From Paragordius varius (Eukaryota > Animalia > Nematomorpha), in assembly GCA_964247055.1 (NCBI GenBank), contig OZ176057.1:2852001-2916000 (forward strand): a stretch of 64,000 nt of DNA, read 5' to 3'. A program made the position numbers and the translations under genes. Of the stretch, positions 18,456-64,000 are shown one piece after another. Position 1 is the stretch's first letter; each line of letters opens with the position of its first letter. The notes beneath the pieces were generated by a model. The model saw nothing but the letters and a program-made list of their open reading frames with translations. It did not search any database and was not told the origin of the DNA.

Positions 18456-18488
18456 TTGTAGTATGTTACCATCCTGGACAATGTTCAA
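18456..18488 (+). CDS. Gene 1 microexon (33 nt): (x)VVCYHPGQCS
   Basis: cttttttgccacag|TTGTA...TGTTCAA|gtataa. Homologous to gene 3 exon 57464 with mostly third-position differences. Confidence 0.85.
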
Positions 18489-18557
18489 GTATAATTTACA
18501 ATATATTAACTATCTTGAAATAAAAATAATTTAATTGACAAAATATATTGTTATTAG

Positions 18558-18581
18558 ATGTTCCTTGTAACCCACCATGCT
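18558..18581 (+). CDS. Gene 1 microexon (24 nt): (N)VPCNPPC
   Basis: ttgttattag|ATGTT...CCATGCT|gtaatt. Symmetric, 69-nt upstream intron. Confidence 0.8.
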
Positions 18582-18933
18582 GTAATTTAATTATTCCCTT
18601 AATTATCAGAGGTGCCCACAAATATAGCGGTCCGCATTCAAAAAAGGGGGCATTAAATTTTATTAGAATTTTAAACATATATGAATATAAAATATTATAA
18701 ACATAATATTTATATTAATTATTTCACCCTATTACGCTAGTTGGTTGCGAAATTTCAGAGTTAATTTAATCAGAATTTTTATAAGATATTTTAAAATACC
18801 ACCAAGATTATTTTTGCAAATTAGCAATTTTATTTTGGAAATTAGAAATATTTTATTTGTTTCACAAAATTTTATGTCAGCCACATAAATCATATTGGAG
18901 ATCTCATGTTGGGCACCCCATTTTACACATACT

Positions 18934-18972
<39 letters not shown>

Positions 18973-18976
18973 TTAG

Positions 18977-18997
18977 ATCCAGATCAGCATAGAAAGG
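18977..18997 (+). CDS. Gene 1 microexon (21 nt): (Y)PDQHRK
   Basis: attattttag|ATCCA...GAAAGG|gtaaaa. Symmetric phase 1. Confidence 0.75.
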
Positions 18998-28579: not shown

Positions 28580-28618
28580 AGTTACTACTACTTAGCCGTT
28601 CACATTCTGGAATAGGAG
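28580..28618 (+). CDS. Gene 1 exon (39 nt): (E)LLLLSRSHSGIG
   Basis: tatataacag|AGTTA...ATAGGAG|gtatat. Symmetric phase 1. Confidence 0.8.
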
Positions 28619-31061
28619 GTATATACTACATATTGTAAAAAAATTATTTTTTGATCAACATATGTAATTGGTAAATTTTTGCTAAATTTAAAAAAAACCT
28701 ATGGTTAAAACAATAGAATTAATTAATTATTTAAACGTATTTAAATCAAGGTAATTTCCAAATTTAATTAATATTTTAAGGTCAAAATTTATATTTATTT
28801 TTTTTAAATAAACATTCAGATCCGAAAAACTTGAAATGTTGCATTTATAAAAAATGCGCTAAATGAGTCGATTTTAAGCAGGCATTAGGAAATTACAAAA
28901 TCTTATAATATTTTTATAAAAAATGGCTTTTTGGGACCTATTGCTGTTAATATTAGATATATAAAATAAAATAAAAACAGTTTTTTTCAAATATCTTTAA
29001 GTTTGTACTAGCTAGAAAGTTACACTGTGTCCAAAAAAGAGGGTTAATTTTTTTTAAATTTTACAGTGCTTATGATCAGAGAATTTATTTGCCGAAATTT
29101 ATTTGTTGAGGACCTAGATTTTGAGATATTGACAGATAATCGAAATCGAGCAAAAATTGAAAATTAAATATAATTAAAGATAATTCAAAAATAATGATAA
29201 AATTTGAAATATTATGATATTATCATTATATAAGATATTTCCAAAATATTAATGCCTAAAATCATATTGTTAGGCTTTCTATAAAATCTCAGATCAAAAG
29301 AGGGTTTTCTTTAACACACTTAAAAGATATTTTTTATGAAACTATAATAAAATAATTATTTATTATTTACTAGTTAAACTCAATTAAATTCATATTTTGA
29401 GTAAAATATTTATATTAAAATAAAAAAAATATTGTTTTTTTATTTTTATATTATTTATCATCTGGTTTATGAGTGTAAAAAAATTTTTACTCTTTTATTT
29501 TGGAATCTTACATGTATGGGTGTTAAAAAATATATAATTTATGCAGAATAAAATTTATTTTCAACCAATCCGTAAATCCCTGTAAGGTTTTTTTGAACAC
29601 AAATTAATTTTACTGGAATATGTAGTGATATTTGGTTTTCCACTACTTTAAAATACTATTTGCATGAATTATATTTATAACCCCGATTCATGTAAGATTC
29701 CAAATAAAACAGTATAAATTATTTATACACTCATAAATCAGATGACAAAATATTGAAAAATAAAAAACAATATTTTTTAATTTTATTTTGATATATAACT
29801 TTTTTACTGTATAAAATATGAATGCTATGATTTTAATAATGAATTTAGCGAGTAAATAATAAAAAAATTAAGTTTTTTTATGTCTTATAAGACATTTAAA
29901 AGAAAAAAGCCATCTTTTAGCTGAGATTTATAAAAACCCTAGCAATATGATTAAGCTATTTATATATAGGAAATATCTCATATAATAATAATATAAATAT
30001 TATCTTATTTTTCAATTTTCTCTCAATATTTTAAAACAAGATCGTAAACAAATAAATATTTTTACTGCAAATGAATACGCTTGTCATAAGCTATCTCATG
30101 ATTTTGTTAAATTGCTTGCACACAGTGTTATATATAATAATTATTTAATATGCTTAACACTTCAGAGCTCTACTTTTTTGTCCTGGTTTATCTTTCTGGG
30201 GTAGTTTTATATTTCAGATCAATTTTGTAAATAAACTAATGTTTTGAAAGATATTGTATTTAATCAAACATTTTTCCTATGTTTTAAAAGCATATCTATT
30301 TTACAGTTTTGTTTAGAACTTAAATTGCGATAGCTCCAAAACAGAATTGCAACAAACAGCTTATATAAAAATAAAAATATATAAAGTTTTTGCTGACAAA
30401 TGTAGCATTAAAGCTTTTTATTATTAGTTATACACATTTTCTAATCATAAAACATTTATTGCCTGTTGCATTGGCAAAAAAATTATAAAAAAAGACGGCA
30501 AAAAAGTTTGAGATGAGGTTTTTTACAATTTTTAAAAAAAAAAATTGTAAAACGCGCCTTAAAGGCTACAGAAGCATTTTATTTAAATTAGGCAGTACCT
30601 TTTTAAATTTTAGATTTGATATAGCCTTAGTATATAAAACTACCCCACAAGGTAATAGAGCGTTAATAATATAAACACATGCAGTTTGATTATTTTAGTT
30701 TTTAATCATAACAGATTTAGTTAGTTATATAAATTTTACAATATGACTTTTAAAGATTACACATTGATTTATAAATGTTGAAGCTTATATAAACCAGGTT
30801 AATTTATTGATTTTAAATTTTAATTAATTAATTTGAATTTAAAAAAATTATATAATAAACAGTATACGAAAACGCCTGACTTCATATATCAATTTCTTAG
30901 TTTATTTTTACTTCATAATCAATTTCTCAATTTATTTTTCTTAAATAATGCAACATGTGTCCCCTAAATTTTTATTTTGCTTTTATGACGTTGGATCCTA
31001 TTGGATGCTCGAATTATCCAAAAAAGTTAATCATCTAAAATCAGTACCATATAATTATTAG

Positions 31062-31127
31062 GTTTGAATCCTTTTAATGGTATGCTTGGAGGCGGTAGCG
31101 GTTCAAGCAATTCAAATTTGGATTTCG
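31062..31127 (+). CDS. Gene 1 exon (66 nt): (G)LNPFNGMLGGGSGSSNSNLDF
   Basis: aattattag|GTTTG...GATTTCG|gtatgt. Gly/Ser-rich, similar to 33652-33711. Confidence 0.85.
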
Positions 31128-31354
31128 GTATGTGATCAAAAAAATTAAATAAATTATAAATGGTTACGAAAAAAGTTTGTAGCGAGAGGTATGCTTGAAA
31201 ATAGAAATGATAAAATAATTTAATCCATTTTACGGGAAAACAAATTTGACATATTATTTCTTTTTTATATTGCACGCATTTTGCCGTAAAATATTATTTA
31301 TATATTGGTTTTATTCTCTAACTCTATATATATATTTTTTTTGTTATCTTGTAG

Positions 31355-31369
31355 TGGCCAGATTTTTGG
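31355..31369 (+). CDS. Gene 1 microexon (15 nt): (V)ARFL
   Basis: ttgttatcttgtag|TGGCCAGATTTTTGG|gtaatt. Ends like exon 23207 (TTG G|gtaatt). Confidence 0.75.
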
Positions 31370-33651
31370 GTAATTTGTTTTTTATACATTATTATTATTA
31401 GATTACACTACACCTTGTCATACATAGAGCTGCGCTAAAAATAAAATAGCATACTAAAACATTCCTGTAACACAGGGGTTCCCAATACAAATGGGTCGCG
31501 GGACGCATTTGAAACATTTATGGGCATTCATATATAATTTCTTAGATTTCAAACATAAAACTGCAAAATAAAAACGGAACTATTTCTTGTTCTCTATTGG
31601 AGAGACTTATTTAGAAAAATAAAAATTACCAATATCACTAAGATTTCATAACCACATCTTTGTATTATGGATGCCAAATTTTTGGCGGGCCGCGTGTTGC
31701 ACTTCTGCTGTACTCCTTGTATTATGTTTAATATAAAATATGAAAATTTTGCTAGATATTAATCCGAGAAAGCTAAGAAGTTAAAATGCAAAAATTGTAT
31801 ATTTTACATATTTTCATAATTGTGAGATATGTTACCTAACTAAATTAGCAAAAACTTGAATTTCACATAAATGTTATATACACATTGCACTATGTTAATG
31901 AATTATATATTTGGTAAATGTATCAAAATTCTTATGGTACATTTGGTTTTAAGCCTTTACAAAAATATTCACATTTTTGTACTCAAACATCGTAAAATTT
32001 GTTTAATTTCTGTGCTAAAAACAATTTTTGGTGAAAGCCAAATGCATTCCAAAATATTATTAATCTTTCATTATAAGCTATAAAAAAAGAAAATATTTTT
32101 ATTAAATAGTTATTTTTACTGCTCACAAACCTCAAATTTATCCGCCACCAAATATATTAGTTTTTTAATAATTAATCCCAAAAACCGAGAATACGCGATA
32201 ATTTTTAATACATGATAAATTATAGCATCAATTAAAGCATACTCTATTTTAATTTTTAATGTTTGTTGGAGCTATCATCCTTTTTAAAGCATCAGCGCTT
32301 AAAAGCATTATAAGTTAATAAAATATTTTTATATCTGCAATGAATATATCTATCACCGATTTTTTAAAATGCAAAAGGAAATAAAAACATAAGATATATT
32401 TATTTAATGATAGAAATGTTGAAGTCTATTGAGTTATGCCTAAGTATTTACTAAACGTGTTTTTCTACCGGTTTTCTCATTTTTCGAAATAGCTTAAGCA
32501 GGCTTTAACGAAATCATTTAAATTTTTAAACTAAGTGTGCTTTTTTAAAAAAATAAATTTGGTACTATAAAACAGGGATGTCCAAAACCCTTTTTGGTAT
32601 CCCAAAAGTGGTAAAAAAATATTTGATTTTAATATTTACAGTTATTTTATAGATATATCGCCAAAAATTGGCCTAAAATTAAAAAAAACCAAAAATATTA
32701 AAGTAAACCGGCAAAATTGTTGTATGGGACACCTCTGCTTTAAAATATCATTCACTATAGATTTCGCTAAATATAGGATATTTGCGTTTATTTTAAGAGA
32801 AATATCCGGTTCTGGAGTGAGGCAAAATTTTAATTTCGGAGCCCTAATAAAAAAAATTTAGAATTTTTTTTTACCTTTTAAATACAGTATAACATATGTT
32901 TTATTTTTTTGGAATGGATTTGTTGCCACAAAATATTAAGCTTAATAAACGCAATTCTATTTTACGACTTCGGGTAATACCACATAAAAAATATAACATC
33001 CTTTAGTAAGCCCCGTAATTATAGATATCCATCAAACATATATTAGATGAATGATTAGGATTATATAAATACTCGCTTTTCCAATCTAAAATAGCTAGCA
33101 AGAAATTAGTATCAAAATTTTAAGAGCTTGTGATAAAGTAAAGTGTAATGCGTAAATGATAAATTTTGTTTTACAAATAAATTTCCATCAAATTTTGTAA
33201 AATAACATTTATTAGATTGGTTAAAATATTTTTACGCTCTGTTTAAAATTTGTTTAATTCAAACATTTTTTATTAATTAAGCTGATAATAGATCTTAATT
33301 ATTAACAATTATGTTTATAGGACACAGAATAAACATAATGTTCTTAGATGGGCAGTGGTTATATTCATATCTAAAATTTCTTGCGGTTAGCCCTGACTTT
33401 AAATGCCTATAAATTATACTTTATAAGTTATTTACCATTTAATCATACCAAAGAACATTAATCATAAACATTTTTAGTTTGGTTTTGCTATATACAATGC
33501 GACCCTAAAATTTACAAAAGATTATGAAAGTTGGTAACTTTTATAAAATAAGAAATGTTGAATATTATATTATTAAATCTAAATTTAAAAACTTTAAAAA
33601 TATTGAAATATATGCAAAAAATAATTATATTATATCGTTATTTAATTATAG

Positions 33652-33711
33652 GTTTAATGCGTAGCTTTGGTGTTGGCGGCAGTTCAAGCAGTTTTAATCA
33701 TGATTTGAACG
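33652..33711 (+). CDS. Gene 1 exon (60 nt): (G)LMRSFGVGGSSSSFNHDLN
   Basis: ttaattatag|GTTTA...TTGAACG|gtatat. Symmetric phase 1. Confidence 0.85.
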
Positions 33712-33809
33712 GTATATAATTTTACAAATAAAATTTTTAAGGGGCTTTTTAGATTTAATGGCAAAATAATTATAGTATAGATTAAATAATCATTGTTAAA
33801 TTTTGATAG

Positions 33810-33880
33810 ACAACATATTTTTGTCACCGAGTTTTATGCATTTTCTAGTATTAACTATTTTGACAGTAAATCAAATCTAA
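33810..33880 (+). CDS. Gene 1 putative terminal exon: (D)NIFLSPSFMHFLVLTILTVNQI-stop, GPI-signal-like tail
   Basis: ttttgatag| acceptor after a 98-nt intron. Open to TAA at 33878-33880; hydrophobic run FMHFLVLTILTV. Confidence 0.65.
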
Positions 33881-36738
33881 TGTAATTACAATTCTACAAT
33901 AACTTTTTATTTTCATGATTACGCCCTCTTTCTATCATAATTATTCTAAAAAATGGTTTTATTTAAAAGCCTACAACGAATGCCCTTTTAAAATATCCCG
34001 AAAGAGTAATTAAAACTCTATAAAATGTTGCTATCTTTCATATCGCTATTTACAGTCATGTAGACTTTATTTTATCAAAAATTTACTTTTTTTTCGATAA
34101 ATGGGTATTAATATTTGGTAATGAATATGAAAACAAAATGGTATTACCATATCATATTCTTTAAAATAGTAAAAGAAGTGTGGGGGAAGGGCGTCGGAAA
34201 TCTTTGGTAAAAAATGATACACTAACTACCAACCCTTCACTTAAAATTATTGTAAAGGGTTAGGAAAATCGTAATTTTTATCTCAATTATAATTTTTTTT
34301 GTTTTGATATGGGAACGATTTATAAGATGCTATATTAAATAATCATAAAATTAAATTCTTTAAAAAATATATCAAAACCATTGTAATTTCCACTTATATA
34401 ACAATAATAAACAGAATTATATAAAATAATTTATTCAAAAATACTTATTACTTATTTTAAGCTACGAAAGGTAAAAATTTAATCAACGTGACATGTGTGC
34501 AATGGTAAAATTGTAAAAATAATACAAATAAATCGCTTTATCTATTTCTATCAATGTAAGATGTAATTTAAATAAAAAATTAGCTTTAATTTTGCCCTTA
34601 ACATTAAGTAAAGACGACATTTTGCAAATATTTTGTAAAATAAAAATGGCGTCGAAGTTGTTTGACCTGTAACTTGTTTTTCAAAACAAAATTTTATTTA
34701 GATATTTTGGCATATTTATATAACTTTTATTAGGAAAGAAGCATAAATTTAAATTGGGACCGTTTCTTTCACTATTTTATTAATATTAACTCAAATTTAG
34801 TCTGGGGTATATTTGGATACCCCAATTTGAATCTAGGTGTTAAATAAAAAATTTATCAAAAAAAATTAATAAATAAAATTTTGTTATAAATAAAATATTA
34901 CCATTCCCATTTAACAACATTTTAAGATTTTCATTTTTTACCAAAGATTTCCGACGCCCTTCACCCCACACTTCTTTTACTTTTTTAAAGAATATGATAT
35001 GGTAATACCATATATCTTGTTTTTATATTCTTTACCAAATATTAATACTCATTTAACGAAAAAAAGTAATTTTTTGATAAAATAAAGTCTACATAATATA
35101 GATGTTGGTTACTTCTGTGTGCAGATGGCAATGAAGAAAGATAACACAATTTTTTTTTATTAAAACACTTATTAATTGCTTTGATGGCATTCAAAACCTC
35201 CATTTTTTTTGATAAAATTACCATCGCATTTTTAATTCTTTGAACAAGGCTTAAAGACTATCCCTGAAGTTTTAGTATTCTTGATCTATAATATTATAGA
35301 AATAAATATGCATTTATATCTATTCATTTTATATCTATTAGTTAAGGTATAGTAATTTTAAGAATAATAATAAAACCAAAACAAAAGCTTTTTCAAAATA
35401 TTTTTAAATTTTAAATGTAACCCTATAAATTATATTAAAATACATTTTTATGAGATTTAACTATATAGCAAAACTTTTAATTCTATAAATAAAAAGGTAT
35501 AATATAAAATTAGGCCAAATATTTCGATGAACTTAAATAAAAAAATTTTTAGTTAGACCATTTTTTTTTCAGATATAGTATTTATGTAATAAAACAAAAT
35601 TAAAATTAAAAATGGCACTTGAAGGAGTTAAAATTTGTCTTGAGTTATTATACTATATTTGTATATATATTCATATCTTTTGTCCATTTATATTTCTTAT
35701 GTTTTCTTATAGTTATCCGAATGTTGATAGGTAATTTTTTTTATACATTTTCTATATATTTTATTTAATCGTTGCTCTACATAAGGCTGTATGATTTTGT
35801 AAATTATTTTTGAAATCGTATCAAATATCATATTACAGTATGAAGTATACATTATTAGAAAGTCATTTATTATTGCCAAATAGCATATACAACAAAGGGC
35901 AGTATTATTGACTAACTTAAAAATGAAAAAATTAACTATAGCCAATAATATTGCTCTTTGTTTTTTATATTATTTGGCAATTAATAACTTTCTACCAATT
36001 TATACCAAATCATACTTTATATCTTGTCGAGTATGTTGCCCACATGTTTTACGAGTTCTATGTTTCATTTTAATTTCATCCTTCTTAGGAGTACCCATCA
36101 TATAAGTTTTTTTTTCTTAACACAAAGTTCAATATTTAGTATTTATGCAATAATATCTGTTAAATCAAACCACGAATTTTTTTCTGTATGCCTAGTTCCG
36201 ATTCATATATATACATTAAAGATTAACGAGTTTATGTCCCACCTTTATTGATATATCTTGGTTACAGAAATTCCTGGCTCATAGATAAAAATACCTTGTT
36301 TAGATTACGTTTTCCTTTTAATCGTTACCTAACATGGGCTCATTACTAATTTGGCAATTTGTTAATTCGTCTTCATTACTATAAAATAATTCCAATTTTA
36401 CATAATTCTTACAAACATTATTATTTGAAAATTTATTTTATTTGGGATTGTGTGATTGCGAATCTCGTCTCTCTCTCTCTCTCTATTTGTTATGTCTAAT
36501 TCCTCCTAAATATCCGAGTTCACAAAAAATCTAATTTTCTTTTTATAACTCAATGATCATTTCTAAAATAATTGCAAAGTTTAAAGCACACATTTATTTA
36601 ACATGCTTCTTATATTTTTATAAATATAATCAAAATTTTTCTGATCTCTTTTTACATAATACGGACCAGCATCCTAAATTTTGGTTCAACTGCTCTCTAA
36701 ATGTAAAATTCATAGGCTTTAATACTGGTACTATACGA

Positions 36739-54601: not shown

Positions 54602-56176
54602 AAGAATTATTCAATTACTTGAATAATATTGAATGATTCCTCAAGACATGTTATGGAGATTATTTTCTTAGCCTACCTTTTTAATAATAAGTCATAGTAC
54701 CTCCTATCATGCAATAGGTGTATGAAACGAAAAGTTAAAATTTATGAGATCGTTTACTCCTTGTTGTGGACTTATCAGTCACATATAAAGAACACGGGTA
54801 AACACTACAGTTAAGATTTTGTATATATACTGAGTATTTAAGTTTTTAAGATGACCCTTTGGGTGTTCCCTGTTTTAAGACCAACATTTGGTAAAAACTT
54901 TAATACTAAGTATACATATAAAAAACCCTAACTGAAAGTGTTTCGTGTTTATTATGTCTGACTGATTACAACAAGGCGAAACGCGTCTCACACTATGACA
55001 TGTGGTAAACACTGTCCTCTGTAAATTTTTGTTTTATAAAACCGCCTATTGCTTGATAGGAGGTCCTATAACATCCAATTGCAAAGGTAGACTAAGTAAA
55101 TAATCTCCATAACATGTTTTATACCTTTGTAGATGACGAAAAGAATTACAGTAAATACCAATAAACCTAGGTACCATAGCCGCGTGTATAAGTGAACAAA
55201 TATAACCAGATCAAAAAATGCTTTTACAATTTAAAATTTGGGAGCCATATTTTGAGATATGTACAACATAGGATTAGGTAGATTACATCAAAAATATTAT
55301 CATGAAATAATTTTAAATATTGAATGAAAAAAGGGTTGTGGTATAAACACCAAGCTGAGATGAGTATTAAACATAGAAAAAACCCATGGAACGCTTACGC
55401 TTTGTTACCAGTTGGAACCCAAAAGTAATTTTTCGAAATTGTGCTTATTTTATATAATCTTCTTCATTTATTGTCGATTAATTTTTTGTAAAATTAATAA
55501 TGTAATGTTCTATATGTTAATTTCTTTAGCAATTACCTCTCTAGAAATATATATATATATATGAATTCTAGATATAAATAATATTTCACACGTTTGCTAA
55601 AAATATGTTAACAATAGTACGCCATAGAGATGCATTACGTCTTACAATTGACTTAGGGTTGTAAATATCTGAGTGATTTAAGTGTTTTACTAAAAAAATA
55701 TATCACCTTTTAAATTTATTCATGTAAACAAGATATATATTAAATGAAAATTTTCTTAAATAGCTTGAGACACGCTAAGTGTGAGGTCCAAAAATAACAT
55801 GTATCTAAACTATTTAAATATTTGCTTCAAGATGTTTAAGAAGTAACCCAATTTATATATATAACTTAGAAAAAATGTCATGTTTTGGACATCGTTTTAT
55901 ATGCTAAAAATTACGAAAAATTTATAATAAAATAAAAAACTCAAAAATAAGAAACAAGAATAGTAATAAAATGGTAATAAAAAATGTATGTATGTACCCT
56001 CAAACCAAAAATAAGGATACTATTCGTTCGCAGGTATTTCTTAGCCAAAATAATACCGTATACTTTAAATTTTTATATACACATACAGATATTAACATAT
56101 TTTTGTTAAAAAAAATTTTGTGAAACATATTCCTCCAACTTTAAAATTATCACTATTTACGACAAATAATCCGTTC

Positions 56177-56228
56177 ATGATTAGACTATCCCTTTTACTG
56201 TGCTTTGCAATTATTGGCTGTGTTTCAG
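56177..56228 (+). CDS. Gene 3 exon 1: signal peptide MIRLSLLLCFAIIGCVS
   Basis: ATG ATT AGA ... GTT TCA G|gtttct, followed by a 98-nt intron. Confidence 0.85.
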
Positions 56229-56326
56229 GTTTCTTTTTCCTAATATTTTTATGCGTAAACTATTATGTAGAATAAATTTCTATGATAACATAACTAACAT
56301 TTTTATAATAATTTTTCTAATCAAAG

Positions 56327-56368
56327 GAGATAATGGGAGTGGTAAACCAGTCGATTCACCAAAACCAG
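56327..56368 (+). CDS. Gene 3 exon (42 nt): (G)DNGSGKPVDSPKP
   Basis: ctaac branch motif; tcaaag|GAGAT...AAACCAG|gtttaa. Confidence 0.85.
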
Positions 56369-56446
56369 GTTTAATATAAATCGCAATTAACTATTTTTCA
56401 TCATTTTTTATCATTATTACAATTACAAATTTTTTAAACTTAATAG

Positions 56447-56464
56447 CAATCCCTGAAGGATCAT
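56447..56464 (+). CDS. Gene 3 microexon (18 nt): (A)IPEGS
   Basis: ttaatag|CAATCCCTGAAGGATCAT|gtaagt, a consensus donor. Confidence 0.85.
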
Positions 56465-57463
56465 GTAAGTCTATGAAATTTTTATTTATTCGTGAAACAT
56501 TTTCAACAATTATTAACTCATATTTTAGTAAAATAATTTATATTATTTGTTATCGCCTAGGTAGTCCTTAATTAAACATTTGGTTATTGATTAAACAAAA
56601 CCCTATTAAAACACCTAATCTTTTAGTTTATATAAAAGTAAAGAGCACTTTAATGCTATATATGTTTTTTAATTCATTAATTTGCATGTAATTAGCCATG
56701 GTTAAAATTTTTCGTTTATTTATTACATATTTAATACCTTGATACCGTTTCACTTTTTTTGTCCTAGTCCCAGAGCTTGTTTTATTAAATAAAACAGTTT
56801 TGAAAGTTAATTGAGGTAAAACTTTAATTATAAAACATTGTTCTATGTATTGGATATATAAGGTTAGGTTACAAATTTTACCGCTTTATGACTTCTAGGG
56901 TCGAAAATTGAAACAGCTCCAAAGGATTGTAACGAACAGCTGTATCATATAGAAATATATCAAAAGTTTGCTGGTAAAATAAAACCTGAATACTTTTTAA
57001 AAATAATATCCATTTCAAACCATACATTTATTGGATGTTGTATTAATAAATAAATGATTTTTGGAAAAAAAATGATGGTAAAATGGATTATTTTACAATT
57101 CTATGCGCCTAAAAGACTCAGGAAAGCTGATTTTAAAATTTTAGGATAAAAATAATCGCTCTTGGATGTAAAACAACCCCCAAAAGGTGAGTGTTAACAC
57201 TATTTTTTCCCACACTTTGATATGTATGTAATAAAATAAATAATCAATCATAAACATAGCTACTGACATGTTTAATTACTCTTATGGCCAATAAAAATAC
57301 AGATATAGCCTATAAATTATGTATTGTAAATAGCAAACTGTATAAACCAATGTTAAGTACTCATTAATTGTGTTTTATCTATAATAATTTTAATAAAATA
57401 GTTTTTAACCAATGAGTGAATATTAAAGTATAGTTAGAACAAATATTTTTCCCAAAATTTTAG

Positions 57464-57523
57464 TCGTATGCTATTACCCACAATGCTCGTATCCACAACC
57501 TCCGCCACCAGAAATGCCTACAG
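57464..57523 (+). CDS. Gene 3 exon (60 nt): (F)VCYYPQCSYPQPPPPEMPT
   Basis: aattttag|TCGTA...CCTACAG|gttttt. Paralogous to 18456-18488. Confidence 0.9.
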
Positions 57524-59530
57524 GTTTTTACCCAGTACTTATAAAATTTTTTCACGAGTACAAAAATCTTTATTCAATATATTTTATAACATTCACACTT
57601 TAAAATACGTATTTCCCTTCAATCAAAACTTCAAAACAATCGAACAACTTTTCATTAAGTTTGATTTTATGTTAAACATAACATTATAAGACGCTAGCTA
57701 ATTGGATCTAACTCCAATTTTGTTTTTTGATATATCCCTTAAAAAAAACTTTAACATTTTATATTTAATCCTAAACTTGCGAATTTTCCTATATTTCATG
57801 AAATATAATAATATATAAAATAGTTTGGGTGTTTCCGAGCTAAATTTATTGAGATATCTAGTATTGTTTTTAGCGTGTTTTACCCTTTCTCTATCTTTCC
57901 TCACCCAAATGTGATAGTTTTTTTGAAAAACTGTAATTCTAAATATTTTTTTTTATACAGGCCAAGAGGGGTATAGTATATCAACACCTCTTAAAACAGT
58001 TTGTACTTTAAGCATTAAGGTAGATTGCTACAAAATGTTATCGCTTGCAAAAATGAAAAGGTCATGAAGTGTTAAATAAATTAAACATTCAAACATTTAT
58101 TAAAAACAACCATTTGTTATAAAATCCAAATTTTATGATATTTTATTAATAAAAATGTTAAAACTAGGGTAATGAAATAGTACTGGACGAAATTAATAAT
58201 TTATCTCAGAACCACCCAAATTTTTAAAGTTTGAAAAATTTAGTCAGGTTGACATAAACATTAAATATTGAAATGTTTGACACCCTAATCAAAATGTAAT
58301 AGTAAAAAATATGATTTTAGATTATATTATGAGTAATAAATAACTGTGTTGTTAACAAGATAAATGAAAATGATATTTTAGTATTTTATTTATATCTTGT
58401 AATAATATATATTTTATTGACTAGAAAATTCTTTAATTATTTGAGTTTTGTATTGGGAAATTGATTTGAAAATGGGTTTAATTATTCAGAAAAATGTATT
58501 TAGATTTGGAAATGGATATGTTTAACATACAGAAACCTAAGAAGAAGCGCATGCTTTGCCTTTCAAAGCTCAAATTTAATTATAATTTGTAAATAGTGAA
58601 TTGTAAGGTACTGCTACTATAATCAAATATAATTCCGATCTAATACTTTAACATTGGACAGAAATAGGTTCGCTAATTTATAACAAAAAATTTTAACTTA
58701 TTTTAACAATTGGGCCAAATATATAAATTGGTATTATTTGGTCTTTTTAAGGTGAATTATTGTATTTTTTTAACTTTTTATAAAAAATGTAACTTCTATC
58801 CGCGATTTGTTAGATAATATAAAATAAAAAAGTATACATATATATATAAAGTGTAGATAGTTGTCAACACGCTCCTGAAAGAATAGTAAAAATTCTAGAA
58901 AAGTTAAAATAACTTTTTAATTATCACAAATAGTAAAAGTATCTTAAGAATCTAAATTCATTTTTCCATCACCGTATAGACTAATCCTTTTAAAATAGCC
59001 CTATAAGACTTAGATCATTTTTGTTAAAACAGATATTTTGGTTGAGTCGGATTATGTCAAAATTTTGATGAAGCATATTTTTGTTTTTGAAATTTAATAC
59101 GATTTGGAGTGACGTTTGTTTGTGAGTTATGGTAAACTATTGTTTAAAAGTTTTAAAAGTCATATTGGTATCTCTTTATAGAACAATGCCAGCTTGCAAT
59201 AATTAGACACCAAAATATTTGAGATTTTGTAAAATTAGAGTATAATATATTTTAATAATTTTGGGAATAAAGTTATTATTATCCAAAAAAATTAAACTAT
59301 ACACGAAATTTCGCGACTTTCAATACTCATTAATACAAGATAACTTCAAAATTATTTTATGATATGATTCCTAAGCCGCAAAACTAGCATCATAATCCCT
59401 ATACATATTTAAAATCTATTTCGCTATTTCTGTGTTGTGATGTTAAATGATATTTTTGCAGTGCACTATTCCACAAGATCATACATAATTATTAGTATGG
59501 CATAAAATTTATTATATTTTATATTTGTAG

Positions 59531-59584
59531 GATGTTATCAGGCAGATTGCCAGGGATATCATCAGCCAGCAAGGCCATCGTCAG
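59531..59584 (+). CDS. Gene 3 exon (54 nt): (G)CYQADCQGYHQPARPSS
   Basis: atatttgtag|GATGT...TCGTCAG|gtattc. Symmetric. Confidence 0.88.
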
Positions 59585-61260
59585 GTATTCTACAGTAAAA
59601 AATTATATGTCAAATTTTGGTTAACTAACATCGGTCGGTGAGTTGTTAATTATAAACGGTAAGAATTCTATATTTTTAAATTTAAAATAATATTTAATAA
59701 AAAACATGAAGTGCGTTTACCCTAAAAAGACATTGAATAAGTTAACTCAAACCTTTTTGTTTTCAACCAAACAGTTGTTATTCGCCATACTCCATATATC
59801 TCGAATTATAAGATTAGATGTGTATTATTTTGGGTAAATAAATTTTTACATAATTTATAACCTATTAATTTTTAAGACCTTGACTCAAATTGGGGTATCA
59901 AAGACCCGAGACTATATAAGTTGTATTTTTAAAAACGACAGAAGTAAACTGTTCCAATTTTATGCTTCTATTCTGATAAAAATTATAGAAATAAGCTAGT
60001 CGTATTATAATTTCGCTTTCCAAAAAAAGTTCCATTCACTATCAGACTACTTCGACGGCAATTTTATATCACAACAAGTTTGCAAAATATCTGTGAATTA
60101 GATTCAACGCTAAAATTTAAGCTAATTGTATTACCTATCTATAACATCGTAAAGAAAAAAGTTTTTCAATTGATTTATTTTTATATTTAGCTATTATACA
60201 CATGTCATGTTAACTAAATTTTTACCTTGATATTTATCCATAAAATAAGTTAAAAGATTTTCAAAAGCAATCATTCCTATAATTTGGTGCTTCATTGTAA
60301 TATAATTGCAAACTTTTGATGTCGATTTCCATAAAAAAGATTTTGAACAGGCCTAGGGTCACCACCCAATTCGATTCATGAATGTGCTGTATACAAGTGT
60401 TAAAATTTTTCTGATTGAAAAATGAACCACATAATTAATTTACAGCAGTCATCTGATTTTGAAAACTTGAAATCAAATTTTTGTATAAAAAAAAATAAAA
60501 ATAAACCCTTTCGTTATTACCGATACTAGGAAAATTTTTACAAAGCATTTTGTAGTGGTAAATCTTAATATATGCTAGTCTCAAACTTTTGCCAATTATC
60601 ATGATTATATTAATCAACTGTTTGTTTCGATATAGTTTAATAGTTACTAAAATAGAGACTTTTTATAACTTTCACACATTTACACATAAAAAATAAAAAG
60701 GTATTATATGGGAACATAAAAACAATCCAAAATATATAGTTCCGTTAAAATTTGAAATTTGGGGTATTATAGAATATACATTTATATATACCTGTGTTGT
60801 TTTGGTTACCCCTGACTTTTTAAAATAAATTAGTAGATCTTATACCAAGTTAAAATGTATTTAATATTTAGGATATACTATGATTTATTAATGGTTGCAG
60901 AATTAAAACCTTAACTAATATGCTGTATTTTATAAACAAAAGTTTTACTTATTTAACCATATATGATTATACCAGTTTTGAACAAACCTCTTTAATATTT
61001 AAAAATAATTTTTATAGTGTCAGATCACGTATTTTGGATTTTGTATAATAAATAATATATTCTTACGCTTGGGCTTAATAAGTAATGAATTTTTAATAAA
61101 GTACCGAGTTGTATTTAATTTATCCAAAACTTTATTAAGAGATGAAATGCCTATTTTTTATACATCGATCAAACAATACCATCATTATATTATAAATAAA
61201 GTATATCTGCTTAAACAATTGTTACCTTATTTATATAAGCATTTTTATATTTACTTATAG

Positions 61261-61284
61261 GTTGTCGTCGTAGCGGATGTTCAG
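61261..61284 (+). CDS. Gene 3 microexon (24 nt): (G)CRRSGCS
   Basis: ttacttatag|GTTGT...GTTCAG|gttaat. Symmetric. Confidence 0.85.
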
Positions 61285-61793
61285 GTTAATTATTTATCAT
61301 TGTTTCATAAAAAATTAAATTTAATTGTATAAATCTTTATTTTATTAATAATTTTTAAGGATTGAATTAACCAGATTTTTTCATAAAACTTATATTTTCA
61401 ATAACGCTTAATAGGGAAGGGATGTTAATTGGAAACATTTCACACATAATTTTGATGCAGTAAAAATTGGAATTATACGGACAAAATATAAAAATATAAG
61501 ACAAATATTTTTTCCAAAACACACCCATACTATTTAAATCTTGTTTTTTTTATTAATAAATCATTGTTAATGAATTATAGATATATAATAGTAACACAAT
61601 CAATTATATATTTTACAATTGTAATAAAATAATTTATTTGGCAAAAATTCATGTTTTATGGTTTGTTAATTAAATAAAAATATTTGCTTTGATATTTTTA
61701 CGTTTCCATAGTATAATTTCAATTTTTACTGTAAAAAACATAAAATGAAAACGCTTTTTATTTAAAGGCTTTGTCTAAATAATTTAATCTACA

Positions 61794-63394
61794 CAGGGCT
61801 TCTTAAACTATGGGTCGCGACCCCATTTGGGGTCGTGAGTGATAAAAAATAAATTTGACAAAAAATGTTTTTTAACTTGTAAAATTATTGTTATAAAGAA
61901 AAATAACAATCATCGTATATAAATATATCCTAAAATCTTCTGGTTCGGAAAGACTGTTTATACCAGCATTTCTATATTGATCATCATAATCTATATATTT
62001 ATAAAAATGGAAAATGCTGGCTTTGTGATCTGTTTCCGGAAAACCGGTAGACACATTCAAATCCAAATGTCAAAAAATATTCATTTCCCGACAATAGCTT
62101 CGCCCTTTTTTAAAATTAGGCCCCTTCGGGCCCACCTTGTGTAAAAAACGTTTTTTTGAAAGTCCACAGTCTCTGAGACAATTTTCCGCAAAAGGTGTTG
62201 GTCGATTTCAAATATGATTTTTTTACCTTTTCTCGATTGCCCCGAACATAGTGGGTTTACTTTTTTAATTTAGGCTCTCTTTTTACCCTCTTCCCCCGTA
62301 AAATGCTATTTTTTTCAAAAAAAACTAAATAATTTTTTGTCGGGTATGAGACCGTTATTCAATGAAGATTCCAGGTATTCCCTATTAAAAGACAAAAATT
62401 TTAGCCTTGCGTTTTTTAAATATTGGCTGCTAGGTAAACAGATAGCTGCTAGAACTGCTCTACTATACAGAAATTTCGTTTTTGGAACTAATTTACAGAA
62501 AATTTATAAAGCCATATGAGCTTAAAAGCTTACCGTAACTAGGTAAAAATTAAGGTCGGGCTTATCAGCCGTTAATTTGGGGTCTTTATGCCCCCATCAT
62601 ATAATTATTTACTGTTGAAGTATTTTTTTGAATAACCCATGAGACGATGGTATCAAAGATAATTCCAAATATTTGCCCTATAAAGGCAAAGAATTTAACT
62701 CAGCACTTTTTCCATACTATGGGTAGGGGTTTCCAAAACAGAGACGCCATATAAAATGGCGTAGTTTTGGAGCTAATGTTCAAAAAACTTAAGGAGCCAT
62801 ACGAGTTTAGTTAAACACACTGGATAATTTGTATAATATCATTCTCTCCTTTTAAAAGGGATCACAAATGATTTACTTTTTATAACCCTTGATCCCTTCT
62901 GTGTGAACACAATTTCAAAATAGAACTTTTAACCATGATTTCGTAAAATAAAAATTTAAAATAAATCCAATGATAGTTGAATACTAACTTTAATAGGGAC
63001 AGTTTAAATATGGTCAATTTCGAGTAAACAATATTTGAGCCTATGCAAAAATTCGGAAAAGAATAATTAAAGACATTTGTTATTAAATATATTTTTTATT
63101 ATTTTTTTATCTTTATTAACTCTATATATTACAAATTATTAGGAATAAGCAAAGCGTAACAGGGCCAGCCAGTATCTTGGTTAAATTATTCAGAAAATGT
63201 TATAGAAATTTATAAAAAATGTAGATTTATTTTTGTCAATTTCTTAAAACCGAAATAATCCTGATAAATATTATCAACAATATTTCTAAGTGTTATTGCG
63301 AAGAAACTATTATTTTTTTCATATTTGTTGGGGTCGTGAAAGAAACACGCCATCATAAATGGGGTCGGGAACTACAAAAGTTTAATAAGCCCTG
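61794..63394. mobile_element. hAT non-autonomous element with internal insertions, in the last intron of gene 3
   Basis: TIR CAGGGCTTCTTAAACT / AGTTTAATAAGCCCTG; gggtcgcgacccc subterminal motif; near-TSD atctacac/atctatac. Confidence 0.75.
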
Positions 63395-63446
63395 ATCTAT
63401 ACTGTTTATATAATTAAACATATGCATATATTTTATTGTATATTAG

Positions 63447-63529
63447 GATATTCATGTGACCAACATTGCAACTGTAATAATTTAATCATAATAATATTAG
63501 TTATATTTATAGTAATTAAAACCACATAA
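63447..63529 (+). CDS. Gene 3 terminal exon: (G)YSCDQHCNCNNLIIIILVIFIVIKTT-stop (membrane anchor or GPI-like tail)
   Basis: tgtatattag acceptor; 12 consecutive I/L/V/F before TAA at 63527-63529. An alternative phase-1 donor (gtaata) lies at 63474. Confidence 0.75.
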
Positions 63530-64000
63530 AACTAATATATTTTCCAAAACCGTCTTGTTTTTCTAGTATTTAAACCCCAAGGATGTCCAATAAAAATGGT
63601 TTTATAGGCCACATTTTAAATCAAAAAATAATAATGGACATTAATAGATAAATATTTTATTAGATTTTAGACCTATATATAAAACCAACAATTTATTTTA
63701 ACATTTTCTCTACAAGTTGATTGTCAAAATTCGGAAAAATTTATCAGAAAATTTGTTCAGAAAATATTTTAGTCTTAGATTTCGTAATGTTATAATTTTT
63801 TTAAATTTTCGCGGGCCAAATGAAGTCTCACACGGTCGCGTATTGATAAACTCTAATCTTACAACAATTTGATGTGAAATCCTTAAATCTAATATCAATG
63901 CAAATCTCCTGTTGTGTGGTATAAACCCGTACAAAAATTTAAAAAAAATTACAATATTTTGTTAATATGATCGGTGAAAAAATCGCTTGAAAGTATACCT

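Follow-up and report, generated by a model that had tools for sequence, protein, structure and literature searches.

The stretch of DNA considered here, hereafter the window, comprises 64,000 nucleotides of the nematomorph Paragordius varius (assembly GCA_964247055.1, contig OZ176057.1, positions 2,852,001 to 2,916,000 of the forward strand), and its subject of interest is a small gene of seven exons on the + strand, which we refer to as gene 3. The guanine-cytosine (GC) content of the window is about 25% throughout, and the assembly to which it belongs amounts to 110.5 Mb in 44 contigs. The only long open reading frames in the window are those of an RTE-type long interspersed nuclear element (24.7-27.0 kb, + strand) and of a Gypsy-type element (48.1-51.9 kb, - strand). 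Gene 3 is best explained as a whole, with a probability of roughly 0.6, as a real single-copy gene for a secreted protein whose last exon reads through to a stop codon.

Recomputation from the sequence recovered every coordinate of the seven-exon model that had been proposed in an earlier note on this DNA (Table 1). The frame, the hydropathy and the residue counts given below come from local joining of these exons. The reading frame opens at 56177, the first ATG after an in-frame stop located 31 codons upstream, and extends over 333 nt, i.e., 110 codons with a TAA end. All six introns have GT-AG boundaries and all junctions are in phase 1, with internal exons of 42, 18, 60, 54, and 24 nt that are each a multiple of three. 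The introns measure, in order, 98, 78, 999, 2007, 1676, and 2162 nt; short ones occur only at the 5' end, and the last two are enlarged by repeats. The exons have a GC content of 0.40 vs. 0.15-0.28 for the introns. With respect to the donors, five out of six read CAG/gt (the slash marks the exon-intron boundary), while the remaining one is CAT/gtaagt, in which the full consensus on the intron side offsets the absent G.

Table 1. Position of gene 3 and its neighbouring features, numbered from the first letter of the window.
Feature	Position	Strand	Description
TATA-like TTTAAAAT	56140..56147	+	37 nt 5' of the ATG; weak, putative promoter element
Exon 1	56177..56228	+	start codon and 17-residue predicted signal peptide; phase-1 donor CAG/gt
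Exon 2	56327..56368	+	42 nt; Gly/Ser/Pro-rich; one N-G-S sequon
Exon 3	56447..56464	+	18 nt; donor CAT/gtaagt
Exon 4	57464..57523	+	60 nt; C-x4-C head, Pro-rich tail; GC peak of 0.62
Exon 5	59531..59584	+	54 nt; C-x4-C head, Pro-rich tail
Exon 6	61261..61284	+	24 nt; C-x4-C module alone
Exon 7, whole	63447..63529	+	last exon of the seven-exon model
Exon 7, module part	63447..63473	+	C-x3-C-x-C; possible donor ACT/gtaata at its end
Exon 7, read-through tail	63474..63529	+	C-N-N, 12 hydrophobic codons, K-T-T, TAA; C-terminus or intron start
AATAAA	63589..63594	+	60 nt past the stop; possible poly(A) signal; hexamer common in such DNA
Dispersed repeat, intron 5	59869..60404		>40 copies at 68-74% identity
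MITE-like element (miniature inverted-repeat transposable element), intron 6	61794..63394		1.6 kb, CAGGGCTT... termini; fills three quarters of the intron

Gene 3 had been described as having a signal peptide, and inspection of the first exon bears this out with an n-region of MIR, a hydrophobic core of 11 residues, and a C-V-S before the junction that fits the -3/-1 rule. Cleavage of the signal peptide would thus fall exactly at the phase-1 junction of exon 1. In the order of the exons, two Gly/Ser/Pro spacers then precede four modules headed by Cys, and the 93 residues that remain after the signal peptide include 13 Pro, 9 Gly, 9 Ser, 9 Cys, 8 Ile, 6 Tyr, and 6 Gln. The proposal that the modules are frame-neutral, with a Cys pair at the start and a Pro-rich spacer after it, agrees with what we find. 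The C-x4-C head assigned to every one of these exons is present in exons 4-6, while exon 7 instead has C-x3-C (in full, C-x3-C-x-C). Each Cys pair may close a loop of its own, as the earlier note proposed, or may take part in bridges from chain to chain. A search of Pfam at E ≤ 10 gave no family for the product of exon 7 (26 aa) or for the open frame in which exon 4 lies (29 aa). We also considered a small glycosylphosphatidylinositol (GPI) protein of the Ly6/uPAR type and rejected it by eye, as gene 3 does not end in C-C...C-N and its Pro-rich, low-complexity sequence is at odds with that type.

A protein of this design would be expected to enter the secretory pathway and to be largely extended and unstructured, with two glycosylatable spacer modules placed before four closely spaced Cys-pair modules. 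Judging from composition, its most likely function is that of an extended matrix or coat protein, secreted or attached to the surface, which could be cross-linked through disulfides and perhaps through Tyr. The alternative, on the same basis, is a secreted factor of the parasite that is directed at the host.

Two observations on the splice sites and two on the repeats may be added here. The acceptor of exon 2 is a tandem one (56325-56330, AAG GAG), with a second site at 56330 that lies 3 nt downstream and in frame, so that its use would add or remove one Gly codon. Donors in the cluster often read CAG/gtt (T at +3), and those with a base other than G at -1 continue as gtaa or gtat (sites 4897, 10131, 56228, 56368, 57523, and 61284), which points to 5' splice sites of two classes. 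The MITE-like element, whose termini were taken by eye from the sequence, has a right end present in more than 40 copies in the genome at 85-96% identity. A second repeat is found directly past gene 3, at about 63630-63787, with copies at 80% identity.

To describe how exceptional the exon chain is, we applied a fixed filter that accepts a phase-1 symmetric open exon with a T-rich acceptor, a good donor, and a GC content of at least 0.36. Over 73 kb this yields 24 distinct exons for phase 1 of the + strand vs. 10-17 for each of the other five combinations of strand and phase. A looser filter adds one candidate in the introns of gene 3 outside the MITE-like element and the repeats (56899-56973), and the stretch in which this candidate sits (56786-57045) has one further match in the genome. 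The unique DNA of the introns shows no exon that would compete with those of the model. The bias is stronger for phase-1 exons that open with C-x3-5-C, which over 283 kb occur at 14 places on the + strand vs. 2 on the - strand; 13 of these 14 places fall within the span from 1.5 kb ahead of the window to position 63473, i.e., inside the gene cluster. Gene 3 itself has four Cys-headed exons within 6 kb where about 0.05 would be expected, corresponding to approximately 80 times the background rate. Its exons are unique in the genome and its introns carry repeats. Taken from the sequence, these properties make it very probable that gene 3 is a real gene.

The kinship of gene 3 is visible at the level of peptides and of single exons. 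Whole-genome comparison at the DNA level returned only self-matches for exons 1-3 and for exon 4, local alignment of each exon with its flanks to the 283 kb gave no match above background, and a very loose blastn search of the genome for relatives of gene 3 returned noise only. The peptide at the start of exon 4, V-C-Y-Y-P-Q-C-S, can nevertheless be set beside V-V-C-Y-H-P-G-Q-C-S, which is encoded by a 33-nt phase-1 exon (18456-18488) of a second gene in the window, gene 1. Written as a degenerate pattern of DNA, C-Y-[YH]-P-(x)-Q-C has just two matches in 110 Mb, one in exon 4 and the other at 18464-18484 of the window, both of them on the same strand and directly after a phase-1 acceptor, and a control with the reversed pattern found 0 matches in the whole genome. 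Reading the codons of the two exons against one another, 5 of the 6 that differ do so synonymously. Divergence of this kind is the signature of copies that are old and have been kept by selection on the peptide.

Within gene 3, the top peptide match of exon 5 among 1139 candidate exons is exon 4. The pattern common to both is C-Y-x3-C-x1-2-Y-x-Q-P-x-x-P, which indicates that exon 5 is an internal duplicate of exon 4. The core of exon 1, L-x-C-F-[VA]-I-I-G, is also found in the first exon of an upstream gene that begins 9.9 kb before the window, where the signal-peptide core reads L-F-C-F-V-I-I-G as compared to L-L-C-F-A-I-I-G in gene 3, with synonymous differences between the two exons. Exons 1, 4, and 5 thus have a mosaic of kin, from which it would follow that exon duplication or exchange has occurred, and the picture that emerges is one of duplication and exchange of exons inside a tandem cluster of secreted-protein genes. 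Since every internal exon is symmetric (1-1), the frame would stay intact if any of them were duplicated, skipped, or swapped from one tandem neighbour to another. The designation of gene 3 as a paralog holds in this limited sense, exon by exon and at the peptide level (exon 4 with gene 1, exon 1 with the upstream gene), and does not extend to the gene as a whole, because there is no DNA-level similarity along it and the links are between single exons.

Two features of the neighbourhood deserve mention. The upstream gene of the cluster has a final exon of about 225 codons, which lies some 855 to 185 bases ahead of the window start and in which a block rich in C-P-P-C is followed by a Thr/His-rich region; this long and ordinary last exon is unlike the micro-exon layout of its neighbours. 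Further out, some 94.6 kb and 101.3 kb ahead of the window start, there are coding exons of the collagen type (Gly-x-y) on both strands, one of which ends with C-x-x-C, and matrix-protein genes are thus apparently present in the wider neighbourhood.

The part of the model that requires the most careful weighing is its 3' end. The reading that we prefer is that the last exon most likely continues to the TAA at 63527-63529 and so would supply a hydrophobic C-terminus of 12 residues. The tail includes 12 hydrophobic codons in a row, all with T as their middle base, followed by K-T-T and the TAA. Runs of at least 12 hydrophobic codons are rare, with 18 in the 566,000 codons of a six-frame translation of the 283 kb, and with 4 among 3101 read-throughs of GT on the + strand of the cluster, a fraction of about 0.1% in which the tail of gene 3 is itself included. 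We therefore regard it as fairly likely that at least one isoform has the tail as coding sequence.

A coding tail would resemble a GPI-attachment signal in its outline rather than a membrane span, and we favour the former by about two to one, since 12 residues are short for a span. Such a signal usually has a hydrophobic stretch of roughly 8-20 residues at the C-terminus, small residues both at the cleavage site and at +2, and a polar spacer of about 6-10 residues after them. An N-terminal signal peptide would in this case be combined with 12 hydrophobic residues near the very C-terminus, followed by K-T-T. The candidate site of cleavage, judged by eye, is Gly84, after which come Tyr85, Ser86 (+2), and a polar spacer of 9 residues (87-95). 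A protein cleaved there would retain exactly six Cys, or three pairs.

Several observations weigh against a coding tail. Its GC content of about 12% is like that of an intron, and it opens with a usable donor, ACT/gtaata, which would make exon 7 a symmetric phase-1 cassette of 27 nt. The earlier note had named this alternative donor, and it is indeed present at 63473/63474. Out of 27 other donors in the cluster, 2 read through into hydrophobic runs of 9-10 residues, and it may be that real intron starts look more hydrophobic than our background estimate allows for. In gene 1 the corresponding boundary is alike (GCT/gtaatt, then TTAAT) and further exons come after it, and the upstream relative has no hydrophobic tail and ends in a long ordinary exon. 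A hydrophobic tail as a trait of the family can be rejected, as the upstream relative is tail-less and the read-through of gene 1 includes only 7-8 hydrophobic residues. At the peptide level, the comparison of the read-through of exon 7 with that of gene 1 gives a score equal to that of the best decoy from the - strand, and hence is not significant.

These observations lead to the more serious of two rival explanations, namely that the seven exons form the 5' half of a longer gene in which the donor at 63473 splices to phase-1 exons beyond the window. The next exons would be a basic one of 21 nt at about 65547-65567 and then Gly/His-rich ones from about 66861 onward, and the hydrophobic tail would belong to an intron or, at most, form an alternative 3' end. 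The symmetric exit of 27 nt that ACT/gtaata provides speaks for such an extension, as does the order of parts in gene 1. There, the C-Y-H-P exon is followed by a Cys exon of 24 nt (donor 18581), a 21-nt exon at 18977-18997, and, past the RTE insertion, Gly-rich N-P-F exons at 31062 and 33652. The N-P-H exons that we find beyond gene 3, at about 68725 and about 70010, are Gly/His-rich, so that both loci can be read as an exon with CY[YH]P-QC, a short Cys exon with T/gtaat at its end, a 21-nt exon, and Gly-rich N-P-[FH] exons. The two 21-nt exons are identical at 15 of 21 bases. On the side of gene 1, the counterpart exon at 28580 is internal, because it has no ATG after the nearest upstream in-frame stop; neither of the Gly-rich "genes" has a signal-peptide exon that is convincing; and the upstream relative holds Cys-rich and His-rich parts within one gene.

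Other observations speak against such an extension. Chance seldom produces 12 hydrophobic codons in a row, and here the run is followed by an in-frame stop and then by AATAAA. The pair of 21-nt exons is dissimilar when read as peptides, and the similarity of their flanks is that of generic splice signals. A weak start exon of 13 residues at about 66047 is available for a separate downstream gene, and the intron that the longer gene implies, 2.1-3.4 kb, would be at or above the longest in the model. Considering both sides, we regard the longer gene as possible and rather unlikely. It may be that gene 1 and "gene 2" together make up a single long modular gene, and likewise gene 3 and the downstream "gene," or that either pair is a single gene for which two 3' ends are available as alternatives. 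The claim that gene 3 is complete as modelled thus stands in part: the unusual tail of 12 residues favours a terminal exon, while the parallel with gene 1, the candidate 21-nt exon 2 kb downstream, and a next "gene" that has no convincing start leave it in some doubt.

Three observations that concern the downstream region can be placed here. The tandem units 18456-18997 plus 28580-34836 and 57464-63473 plus about 65547-70063 have the same order of exon types, which suggests a segmental duplication. The exon at 66861 (region of about 66821-66902) is preceded by a T-rich acceptor tract that encodes, in frame and after an ATG, a stretch of 14 residues resembling a signal peptide, which shows that tracts of pyrimidines can apparently mimic signal peptides in this genome. 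Reading through past 66902 yields M-M and then a hydrophobic run of 10 residues.

The second rival, that gene 3 is non-functional and represents either open segments that line up by chance or a copy that has decayed and is no longer expressed, would accord with the lack of a close paralog, with exon pieces that match no family, and with the weak acceptor of exon 2 (caaag), but it is highly improbable given an exon excess specific to strand and phase, a genome-unique motif common to exon 4 and the gene 1 exon with synonymous divergence, a frame that is intact across seven exons, and unique exons set between introns that carry repeats.

Returning to gene 3 as a secreted-protein gene with a read-through last exon, a wider and quite speculative proposal would be that the cluster operates as a tandem "exon workshop" in a phylum of parasitic worms from which micro-exon genes are not known to have been described. 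Neighbouring secreted-protein genes would swap and duplicate phase-1 micro-exons, the last exon would have either a membrane/GPI tail or a splice to Gly/His-rich modules, with anchored as well as soluble surface proteins coming from one locus, and the whole would be a convergent counterpart of the micro-exon genes (MEGs) of schistosomes and the bicycle genes of aphids. The basis for this proposal is that gene 3 has its signal-peptide exon in common with one neighbour and its Cys-Tyr exon with another, together with an internal exon duplication. We consider it doubtful. Taken alone, gene 3 is an ordinary member of the class of micro-exon genes. Pairing micro-exon genes with Nematomorpha yields only a flatworm phylogeny in the library that we searched. 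Genes like gene 3 escape both ordinary gene finders and homology searches, and micro-exon genes of such a type encode secreted or surface proteins that serve contact with the host or the building of an outer layer. If confirmed by RNA, gene 3 would be a compact and easily assayed example in which seven exons share one clear repeating motif and the 3' end can be tested for being either anchored or extended, and it would show exon-level shuffling between tandem neighbours.

The design of gene 3 can be compared to several known systems. Extracellular proteins assembled by exon shuffling follow the general rule of phase-1 symmetric (1-1) exons placed behind a signal peptide, and one study reportedly treats the symmetry of exon phases together with disorder. 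Gene 3 resembles these proteins in having exons that are all in phase 1, modules prone to disorder, and a phase-1 junction at its signal peptide; it differs in that its modules comprise 6-20 residues, whereas theirs are folded domains. Envelope precursors of the SPRR/LCE type consist of short Pro-rich repeats punctuated by Cys, and coats of the procyclin type place a Pro-rich rod on a GPI anchor. The likeness of gene 3 to both types lies in composition and in a plausible mode of action, and is a functional analogy only. Its gene structure and lineage are quite different from theirs, and homology is not claimed.

A closer parallel in layout is offered by the bicycle genes of aphids (PMC9168663) and the cassette effectors of the pea aphid (PMC7495047), which like gene 3 have secreted products, many small exons in a single phase, and short repeated motifs with Cys and Tyr. 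As with gene 3, evolution in these families is too fast for sequence searches (PMC9168663; PMC7495047). Almost all internal exons of the bicycle genes are in phase 2 and their motifs are paired C-Y-C (PMC9168663), unlike gene 3 with its phase 1 and its C-Y-x3-C (exons 4 and 5), C-x4-C (exon 6), and C-x3-C-x-C (exon 7). The bicycle and cassette families also have hundreds of members, as opposed to the two genome copies of the C-Y-[YH]-P-(x)-Q-C type of exon in gene 3.

In the MEGs of schistosomes, the first exon encodes a signal peptide, the internal exons measure 6-81 bp in multiples of three, and the introns are long (0.1-5 kb) and become shorter toward the gene ends (bioRxiv 10.1101/2023.06.21.545858). 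They are composed of 10-20 very short exons, mostly of about 15 bp, are described as specific to the Schistosomatidae, and have exon skipping as their hallmark (bioRxiv 10.1101/2023.06.21.545858). Gene 3 is similar to them in its signal-peptide first exon, in its short internal exons in multiples of three, and in its much longer introns, the shortest of which are at the 5' end. It further resembles them as a gene with tandem relatives, in a parasitic animal, whose small and probably secreted product has no recognisable domain. It departs from them with seven exons instead of 10-20, and with internal exons of 18-60 nt, only two of which are at most 24 nt long, where those of MEGs are mostly of 15 nt. 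Gene 3 also comes from a different phylum, and its likeness to the MEGs of schistosomes is one of architecture.

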